Notes: generated from the sequence alone by a model not told the origin. Positions 28,272 through 29,329 are shown, counted from the whole stretch's first letter. The stretch is DNA of 63,252 nucleotides, filler included, from Octopus bimaculoides (GCF_001194135.2; 4 parts of 4 records of this genome joined end to end with filler, not necessarily neighbours in it), one strand, 5' to 3'. Numbers and translations are program-made.

Positions 28272-28573
28272 CCACCAATACACCCAATCCACTAATAAAC
28301 ACAATAACCGATAGGTTAAATAAGATTAGGAAAGACTGACTAAGTAGATATACGAATTCAGTTTCAACATTACTGTATCTTTTTTCGCGCTGCTTTCGCG
28401 GATTCCCATCACTCACTGTCGCCATCCAGTTCCATTATTATAATATCTTTCATAGAGACTCTTTCATTAGCTGATTACACAACCATAGATGCCATTACTA
28501 TGAGTGCATTGCAGTTACTCTCTTAATAGAGCTTGGTGTACATTATTTACATTAGACGGATATTTGTCCTCAT

Positions 28574-28614
28574 CTTGTTTCGGCTAATATACTCTCCAGC
28601 CTTCATCAAATGTC
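28574..28614 (-). ncRNA. Hammerhead motif, left arm, defective
   Basis: The minus strand reads ACAT-TTGATGA-A-GGCTG(gagagtatat)TAGCC-GAAAC. C3 is changed to T, and the sequence after GAAAC (cleavage site and stem I 3' strand) is deleted relative to the right arm. Confidence 0.65.
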
Positions 28615-28955
28615 TTGGGAAAATTTCGAACCTGGGTTCTCATTCCTAAGGTATTTTTCGATGTCATTATTATTATTATTATTATTATTATTATTATTAT
28701 TATTATTATTATTATTATTATTATTATTATTATTATTATTATTATTATTATTATTATTATTATTATTATTATTATTCAAGTCACTACTTAGAATCGAACT
28801 CGGAATCTTGGGGTTAAGAGCGCGAGCTATTAACCCCAAGATTCCGAGTTCGATTCCAGTCAGTGACCTGAATAATAATAATAATAATAATAATAATAAT
28901 AATAACATCGAAAAATACTTTAGGAATGAGAACCCAGGTTCGAAATTTCCCCAAG

Positions 28956-28999
28956 ACACCTAATGGAGGCTGGAGAGTATATCATCCAAGACGTTGTGT
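28956..28999 (+). ncRNA. Hammerhead motif, right arm, defective
   Basis: ACAC-CTAATGG-A-GGCTG(gagagtatat)CATCC-AAGA-CG-TT-GTGT. Stem I (ACAC/GTGT) and the ACGT mini-stem III are intact. Core nucleotides are substituted. Confidence 0.65.
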
Positions 29000-29329
29000 T
29001 AACAACAAACAAGATGAGGACAAATATCCGTCAAATGTAAATAATGTACATAATTCCTCATCTCTCAAATATAAAACTGTAGAGCTTGGTGATCCTGACC
29101 GTTGATCTTCTAGGGTTCCTCCACTCAGCATCAATGTAAGATGCTCAATTGGGCTCTTCCGCTAACTTTTCACAATGCACCATGCTGCAGTCTCATGACT
29201 TCGCCATATCCTTGGCAGGGCGGCTGAACGGGTGCTAAACCTTGCCAAAGGCAACTATGCAGGGTATTTTCAAAATACCCGCATACCCAGACTGTACTTT
29301 TTAATATAAGAACAGTCAACTATTTTATA

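Follow-up and report, generated by a model that had tools for sequence, protein, structure and literature searches.

Minimal hammerhead ribozymes (min-HHRs) of metazoan Penelope-like elements (PLEs) are mostly dispersed, decayed single motifs, some of which form dual motifs on opposite strands 100-700 bp apart, and their emergent traits are an additional base separating A9 from G10.1, pairing of G10.1 with C11.1, a palindromic 15.2-16.2 segment without loop 3 and a helix I that is 4-5 bp long (Cervera & de la Pena 2014, PMC4209133; see also Lunse et al. 2016, cited in PMC6765202). We describe here an insertion with remnants of such a motif in two inverted arms, located in a stretch of Octopus bimaculoides DNA of 63,252 nt (4 parts of 4 records of GCF_001194135.2 joined end to end, filler included; hereafter the window). 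Our data suggest that positions 28539-29079 probably arose in one ancient retrotransposition event of a family of short, non-autonomous retroelements found in octopus genomes, mobilised by a PLE with priming on both target strands. The motif of this family shares with the PLE min-HHRs the CUGANGA...GAAA core, the bulged A9/G10.1 nucleotide, the G10.1-C11.1 pair, the absence of a helix III loop together with a palindromic ACGU, a helix I of 4-5 bp, the mostly dispersed and decayed state of the single motifs and the spacing of the opposite-strand pairs (100-700 bp). It differs in lying within a unit of ~270-350 nt which opens with a tRNA-like head followed by (AAT)n, and not in a pseudo-long terminal repeat (pLTR) beside an open reading frame (ORF) for reverse transcriptase (RT) and endonuclease (EN), in having a helix II of 5-6 bp instead of 7-8, and in being known from sequence alone.

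Sm-alpha and Sj-alpha of Schistosoma are tRNA-derived elements, similar to short interspersed elements (SINEs), which carry hammerheads (Ferbeyre 1998, Laha 2000, via PMC2770079 and PMC6765202). They are short non-autonomous retroposons of high copy number in which a tRNA-derived head of RNA polymerase III (Pol III) type is combined with a type I hammerhead, and in this they resemble the octopus family with its putatively tRNA-derived head. Sm-alpha has a canonical active hammerhead and often forms tandem arrays from which cleavage frees monomers, whereas the octopus family has the minimal PLE variant, an internal (AAT)n tract, 55-84 nt downstream of the predicted cut in every copy, no tandem copies in nine loci and a systematic head-to-head inverted insertion. 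Animal non-LTR retrozymes consist of units of 170-400 bp repeated head to tail, carry canonical type I hammerheads that have helix III and loop-loop contacts, and are expressed as circular RNA (Cervera & de la Pena 2020, PMC7229834); a case has been made that they derive from PLEs and are non-autonomous (Li et al. 2026, preprint 10.64898/2026.07.22.740005). They are comparable with the octopus family as short, non-coding, hammerhead-bearing elements thought to depend on PLEs; the octopus family differs by its dispersed copies, its minimal hammerhead and its tRNA-like head. An earlier note, made from the sequence of the window, had proposed a SINE/retrozyme hybrid, and we rejected the retrozyme part of this proposal, given that no tandem (head-to-tail) copies occur in the nine further loci described below, that the hammerhead is of the minimal type with no canonical one seen in the family, and that the Rfam Hammerhead models were negative.

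PLE insertions typically contain a neighbouring copy, inverted and 5'-truncated, together with a tail of 30-40 bp that is often present at a single end (Craig et al. 2021, PMC8557442). In work with a purified PLE protein, both target strands were cleaved and extended, RT began at two internal sites located 85-92 nt past the hammerhead cut, the interval between these sites being the tail, and insertion did not require cleavage by the hammerhead (Frangieh et al. 2024, PMC11167929). The octopus copies are in agreement with this architecture (Evgen'ev & Arkhipova 2005; PMC8557442; PMC11167929) in their adjacent inverted 5'-truncated copy, the optional one-end tail of ~30 nt, the variable length of the target-site duplication (TSD), the absence of poly(A) and the 3' ends at a fixed distance downstream of the hammerhead. 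They differ from it in having neither an RT/GIY-YIG ORF nor a pLTR tandem, and are thus non-autonomous, and in the length of the tail, which at 29 nt is at the low edge of the published range.

The insertion in the window is a near-palindrome of 541 bp with its centre at 28823/28824, and the sequence is as the earlier note had described it, namely one insertion event inside an exact 12-bp TSD (Table 1). Outward from the centre, each arm is composed of a 47-nt tRNA-like segment, an AAT microsatellite, a 50-nt body, a hammerhead-like stretch and a 3' region; this order had been correctly recognised before, with a spacer estimated at about 55 nt where we measure 50 nt. The outer end of the right arm reaches 29 nt beyond the point where the left arm stops. 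The arms diverge at 17 of 174 non-microsatellite positions (9.8%), and the conservation of the TSD at 12/12 despite this divergence is unsurprising (probability about 0.3). Both arms are 5'-truncated, with dead hammerheads and a Pol III promoter that is dead too, the A box being absent, and no further copy of them was found in the rest of the window by BLASTN and nhmmer. The window locus is a dead, decayed copy for which no function is expected.

Table 1. Features of the head-to-head insertion in the Octopus bimaculoides window (positions counted from the first letter of the window)
Feature	Position	Strand	Basis
Left TSD, TAGAGCTTGGTG	28527-28538		exact 12/12 direct repeat with 29080-29091
Left arm, region 3' of the hammerhead; stops at the proximal 3' end (...AATAATGTA), tail-less	28539-28576	-	arm alignment
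Left-arm hammerhead remnant, ACAUUUGAUGAAGGCUGGAGAGUAUAUUAGCCGAAAC	28577-28613	-	arm alignment, family consensus
Left-arm 50-nt body (microsatellite to hammerhead), with a second B-box-like CAGGTTCGAAA	28614-28663	-	arm alignment
Left-arm internal microsatellite, (AAT)37, which is (ATT)37 on the + strand	28666-28776	-	Tandem Repeats Finder
Left-arm tRNA-like head, 5'-truncated: anticodon-loop-like CTCTTAA, variable loop, T arm with B box AGTTCGATTCT	28777-28823	-	arm alignment
Arm junction, self-complementary patch GGTTAAGAGC-GCGA-GCTATTAACC	28812-28835		3'-terminal DNA hairpin fold
Right-arm tRNA-like head, 5'-truncated, without A box; B box AGTTCGATTCC at 28846-28857	28824-28870	+	arm alignment
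Right-arm internal microsatellite, (AAT)12	28871-28905	+	Tandem Repeats Finder
Right-arm 50-nt body	28906-28955	+	arm alignment
Right-arm hammerhead remnant, ACAC-CUAAUGG-A-GGCUGG..CAUCC-AAGA-CG-UU-GUGU	28956-28999	+	arm alignment, family consensus
Right-arm region 3' of the hammerhead, common to the left arm	29000-29050	+	arm alignment
29-nt tail (TAATTCCTCATCTCTCAAATATAAAACTG), right arm only	29051-29079	+	arm alignment
Right TSD, TAGAGCTTGGTG	29080-29091		exact 12/12 direct repeat with 28527-28538

Other copies of the element were retrieved through spurious ORFs, the right arm being open in one frame through the body, the hammerhead and the tail. The right-arm peptide matches a 51-aa 'uncharacterized protein' of Octopus bimaculoides (UniRef) with 81% identity, and a two-sequence profile led to 99 ORF clusters, which form two families, A, which is octopus-like, and B, which is very abundant (>2,700 ORFs). 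Families A and B contain the conserved peptide ..TP(D/E)EG(W/R)R.Y(Q/R)PKRC.., which back-translates to CC-N-GA-N-GA-R-GG ... CC-N-AA-R-CG-N-UG-Y, and the commonest variants of this core peptide, P to L and R to H or C, are the CpG decays predicted for CCG and CGU. Nine independent loci were obtained as DNA from Logan contigs (L001, L003, L004 and L128-L133). Little was gained from a profile search of a word-indexed database with 27 family-A peptides, which gave just nine matches, and a metagenome scan with GAAGGCTGGAGRGNATAT gave more than 120 chance matches, none of them related by BLAST.

Two further observations concern these peptides. The members of family B (...SRVRQTPEEGRRTYRPKRCGNNNKDEDNSPKTLNDKNHQASSQKFRQ; P0003, P0007, P0021, P0028, P0031, P0083 and >2,700 others) have the same implied hammerhead core, and they are often found as head-to-tail units of 43 aa (129 nt) on long ENA contigs. 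The top match of the profile, P0002 (2162 aa), is a tandem-repeat ORF with the unit MQYKAITPLHLDQGCSNTYYREDAIQSNHTTTPRLGVQQYILQRGCNTKQSHHYTQTRGAAIHITER and 28 weak stretches, and it may be a distant hammerhead-bearing satellite or else a compositional match.

The comparison of the copies allowed us to describe the head of the element beyond the truncated window arms. In each of these arms the head segment shows an anticodon-loop-like CT(C/A)TTAA, AAGAT as variable loop and, in the T arm, AGTTCGATTC(C/T); the B box agrees at 10/11 positions in both arms (B-box-like AGTTCGATTCC, also at 28790-28801 in the left arm), and the A box is absent through 5' truncation. The 5' part, GGGCATATGG(C/T)RCAGTGGTTAAGAGC..., was derived from L003, L128 and L133 and from the peptide GIWHSG of P0019, its 5' GGGCATATGGCRCAGTGG being given by these other copies and this one peptide. 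The head extended in this way presents an A-box-like TGGCRCAGTGG, a D-loop, an anticodon arm GGG-CTNNTAA-CCC and a B box at tRNA spacing. We take it to be colinear with the tRNA layout, and the head is likely tRNA-derived. A T4 run is absent from the sense strand of both the right arm and the consensus.

L003, L132 and L133 likewise have the head, the (AAT)n tract and the hammerhead module in one continuous stretch, with a degenerate (AAT)n at the equivalent place, and the linkage that had been noticed in the window arms is consequently a property of the family. Since a further 185-215 nt follow the (AAT)n in all copies, this tract is internal to the element and is ruled out as its 3' tail. 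Judging from the other copies, the full-length unit would consist of a ~75-nt tRNA-like head (5' GGGCATATGG..., A-box-like motif, B box AGTTCGATTCC), (AAT)n, a body of 50 nt, a minimal type I hammerhead of Penelope type (ACAC-CUGAUGA-A-GGCUG..CAGCC-GAAA-CG-UU-GUGU) and then 55 or ~84 nt which would carry the alternative 3' ends. A composite origin, in which a tRNA unit with (AAT)n was fused to a PLE 3' fragment, is conceivable, because 3' ends of R4/Dong-like long interspersed elements (LINEs) with (AAT)n occur in the same window.

P0019 is itself an annotated protein, XP_052825882.1, a 94-aa 'dystrobrevin beta isoform X1' of Octopus bimaculoides (GCA_001194135.2). Its first ~33 residues (MPMGIWHSGEGWRVYQPKCCVNNKQDEDKYPSK...) are the translation of an internally deleted copy of the element, in which the 5' end of the head is fused to the hammerhead region, and this copy is either exonised or an annotation artefact.

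The hammerhead is broken in the window and intact in the family consensus. The right arm has CUAAUGG and AAGA where CUGAUGA and GAAA are expected, which inactivates the core at G5, A9 and G12, with A13 changed too; its predicted cleavage site lies after 28995. The left arm reads ACAU-UUGAUGA-A-GGCUGG...UAGCC-GAAAC, with C3 changed to U, and between two AAAC repeats it has lost 18 nt (GTTGTGTTAACAACAAAC), among them the cleavage site and helix I's 3' strand. Neither arm has the catalytic core C3-U4-G5-A6-N7-G8-A9 / G12-A13-A14, whereas it is present in the majority consensus of 11 copies (the nine Logan loci and the two window arms), AAGACAC-CTGATGA-A-GGCTGGAGnGTATATCAnCC-GAAA-CG-TT-GTGT-TAACAA. 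As this consensus was drawn without reference to any hammerhead rule and is identical to the complete minimal type I hammerhead that the earlier note had reconstructed by combining the two arms, the reconstruction is real at the family level. In L133 both halves of the core, CUGACGA and GAAA, are still intact. A relaxed min-HHR descriptor matches the consensus and has 0 matches in 40 Mb of random sequence of the same composition (chance expectation <1e-5 per element), and the minimum free energy fold of the consensus includes helix I (5 bp) and helix II (6 bp), with a z-score of -2.7.

All four of the traits listed for PLE min-HHRs (PMC4209133) were found in the motif of the octopus family. 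An unpaired A follows the core, between A9 and G10.1, in 11/11 copies, the 10.1-11.1 pair is G-C in 9/11, and the palindromic 15.2-16.2 segment without helix III loop reads GAAA-CG-UU in the consensus and the right arm, the CA/TG variants seen elsewhere corresponding to CpG decay. Helices I and II pair in 82% of cells, compared with 25-55% in slid registers, with just four double-change cells and no significant covariation; the compensatory changes are isolated only (UUAC/GUAA in helix I of L004, G-C for C-G in helix II of L133). Covariation of the peptide positions W/R and Q/R, which represent the pair 10.4-11.4, is marginal (p about 0.03-0.05) and confounded by CpG decay. At the level of the family, the predicted hammerhead is thus well supported as a PLE-type sequence motif, and it finds no support as an active ribozyme at the window locus.

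The reading frame that crosses the hammerhead can be considered separately. The family consensus (window 28930-29079, + strand) has an open frame of >50 codons which begins at an ATG (ATGAGAACC...) and runs across the hammerhead up to the tail, an observation biased by the ORF-based ascertainment, and a second ATG lies within the hammerhead core (CUG-AUG-A). In the PLE of the anole, the ORF begins inside the hammerhead, and the octopus module may therefore derive from a PLE pLTR/ORF junction.

Of the loci with a visible 5' side (the window, L001, L003, L004, L128 and L133), 6/6 have an inverted partner. The pairs are symmetric in the window, L001 and L133, and L004 is also an inverted pair; in L003 and L128, a short inverted 3' fragment (64-85 nt) adjoins a full-length copy, the two arms being truncated at different points. 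The TSDs measure 12 bp in the window, 10 bp in L128 (ATAAATAGTA) and 7 bp in L003 (AGAAACA). In these same three insertions, one arm closes with the tail TCCTCATCTCT.AA.TATA.AAC, of 26-31 nt (29 nt in the window), and the other at ...AATAAT(G/A)T(A/G)CA (...AATAATGTACA), the right arms of L128 and L003 stopping at the same point as the proximal 3' end of the left arm in the window. No RT/GIY-YIG ORF was found within the window. By analogy with the described PLEs (PMC8557442, PMC11167929), where an inverted partner and a one-sided tail are hallmarks of integration, the family shows the PLE insertion signature, in agreement with the PLE-like insertion which had been suggested for the window. The idea that self-cleavage determines the RNA's 3' end, also put forward in the earlier note, has to be abandoned because every copy runs 55-84 nt past the predicted cut (55 and 84 nt for the two window arms), and these ends fit the internal RT start sites of PLEs instead.

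As had been observed, the arms of the window join within a self-complementary patch of the tRNA-like head. This patch sets the D-loop region of the head against its anticodon-loop region, GGTTAAGAGC being the D-loop region in L003 and L133, and as a 3'-terminal hairpin it forms 9/10 bp with a 4-nt loop (-5.6 kcal/mol, z -1.6). L001 and L133 join at the short palindromes CCTCAG..CTGAGG and CATATG.

Several steps could be proposed for such an insertion in octopus genomes, which hold recently active Penelope families (PMC13282606). A PLE GIY-YIG endonuclease/RT, acting in trans, would cut the two target strands 12 bp apart, and reverse transcription would be primed on both strands from two alternative internal start sites ~29 nt apart, which would explain the one-sided tail. 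The two antisense cDNAs, converging on each other, could anneal only at a self-complementary spot, in this case the D-loop/anticodon-loop patch of the head, and repair would leave two 5'-truncated copies, head to head, inside the 12-bp TSD. The hammerhead would then be a part of the borrowed PLE 3' module recognised by the RT, and not what sets the 3' end of the inserted RNA.

Other origins of the palindrome have to be weighed against this PLE-mediated priming on both strands. The same element with the same dependence on a PLE could have produced it from one cDNA, whose first strand would extend from the right end to the D-loop region, its 3' end (GCTCTTAACC) snapping back on its own GGTTAATAGC to be self-copied. 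The palindrome centre is indeed an intrinsic, 3'-terminal hairpin, its sole stem mismatch falls where the anticodon-loop sequence of the family departs from the D-loop complement, and the joining of L001 and L133 at short palindromes is of the same kind; on the other hand, the z-score of the hairpin is modest, a snap-back yields symmetric arms only and does not produce the unequal arms of L003 and L128, and it leaves unexplained why the copied arm ends 29 nt short, precisely at the independent 3' end of other insertions. We consider this origin, which is the fold-back template switch of the earlier note and the main rival, unlikely for the window, while conceding it some weight; it explains the symmetric cases equally well, and it does not hold as a general cause since the arms of L003 and L128 are truncated at different points. 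A palindrome created by assembly or library preparation is scarcely credible. The draft assembly is gapped (N runs), with a probable gap artefact nearby (24853-25552), but a library or assembly fold-back would yield a perfect palindrome, whereas these arms differ by 9.8%, by an 18-nt indel and by 25 repeat units; the window palindrome is therefore real genomic sequence, and the exact TSD that bounds the unit and the same architecture in independent contigs point in the same direction.

An ordinary tRNA SINE dependent on a LINE, for example on the (TAA)n-associated R4/Dong-like LINEs, with an inversion due to L1-style twin priming or later rearrangement and an incidental hammerhead-like consensus, would suit several features of the region: 3' fragments of R4/Dong-like LINEs in the same window terminate in (AAT)n, Dong-R4 elements are abundant in octopus (PMC13282606), and the end of the head, ...CCTG(AAT)n, is rather like those LINE ends. 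We nevertheless regard it as very improbable, as the end of the element is not (AAT)n, no poly(A) or repeat tail is found at the TSD, twin priming inverts different parts of one RNA while both arms here hold the same 3' part, a min-HHR match has only the very low chance expectation per element given above, and the one-sided tail is specific to PLEs (PMC8557442, PMC11167929). Still less probable, and rejected, is a miniature inverted-repeat transposable element (MITE) or foldback DNA transposon with the long inverted arms as its own terminal repeats. A near-palindrome of this size with a flanking direct repeat evokes such an element, but the inverted repeat falls short of the right end, where 29 unpaired nt precede the TSD, the length of the TSD is not fixed (12, 10 and 7 bp), and the junction point varies by copy, one arm being reduced to 64-85 nt in L003 and L128.

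The interpretation as PLE-mediated insertion with priming on both strands is itself weakened by a number of points. The loci examined are only nine, all those outside the window come from one set of Logan runs, and their retrieval through ORFs introduces an ascertainment bias. The Rfam covariance models gave neither a hammerhead nor a tRNA in the window or five related loci (cmscan, E<=10), ARAGORN with default settings found no tRNA in the window, and it called one only at the 80% threshold and only on a partly hand-edited consensus. The covariation in helices I and II is not significant among 11 decayed copies, the observed pairing being matched in 198/500 shuffles. In L001 both arms carry the tail and a clear TSD is absent, and the symmetric junction of the window is explained equally well by the snap-back of one cDNA. 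Finally, the PLE partner is presumed, no autonomous PLE with this 3' module having been found, although no eukaryotic genome was searched for one at the DNA level.

The novelty of the combination has to be restricted compared with what the earlier note supposed, as tRNA-derived SINE-like elements with hammerheads are already known in Sm-alpha and Sj-alpha; in the literature that we searched, which did not extend to Repbase and Dfam, we found no described cephalopod family of this kind, nor a tRNA head joined to a minimal PLE hammerhead/RT-entry module. The octopus family is a new family of a broadly known kind, and a repeat library of octopus may already list it among unclassified SINEs. By the usual account, SINEs parasitise LINEs. 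We put forward, tentatively and as a possibility more doubtful than the insertion mechanism itself, that this is the first clear tRNA-headed, Pol III-type SINE to parasitise a PLE through a min-HHR and RT-entry module instead of a LINE tail, its copies being an in vivo record of priming on both strands.

Should this be true, the rule that pairs a SINE with its partner would extend to a third class of retroelements, and priming on both target strands in PLE integration, so far known only in vitro, would be recorded in vivo by the inverted pairs whose arms end at two start sites ~29 nt apart. The main value of the octopus family is that of a readable genomic record of PLE integration, a poorly understood mechanism; its copies, short, abundant and easily aligned, would allow a genome-wide readout of both-strand priming, of the two RT start sites and of the self-complementary junctions. 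The thousands of 'orphan' minimal hammerheads of animal genomes would also find, in cephalopods, a concrete non-autonomous vehicle.

Other repeats were observed elsewhere in the window. Two C-terminal LINE ORF fragments (36499-37359 and 38258-39106, + strand), with weak zf-RVT matches and a PD..D..K-like stretch, adjoin near-identical 3' ends which close in (AAT)n (36634-36685, 38184-38237, 39162-39225 and 39487-39549). They resemble elements of the R4/Dong type, whose targets are TAA repeats, and the numerous (AAT)n tracts of the window may have come from them. The dozens of Rfam matches to mir-297, mir-3149 and mir-466 below the gathering score (40640-41704, 30960-31040, 32376-32480 and 19667-19790) were rejected as false positives on TG, TA and TATG microsatellites. 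At 24853-25552, a 355-bp unit is present twice, with 100% identity, around a gap of 10 N (25198-25207); rather than being a true tandem duplication, it most likely arose as an artefact when the gap was closed in the draft assembly. Another abundant tRNA-derived SINE of octopus (...GGCTGCGTGGTAAGTAGCTTGCTTACCAACCATATGGTTCCGGGTTCAGTCCC...) is found at ~39952-40110, ~37650-37808 and 37849-37958, and at 1735-1786 of L003, several of its copies abutting (TAA)n.

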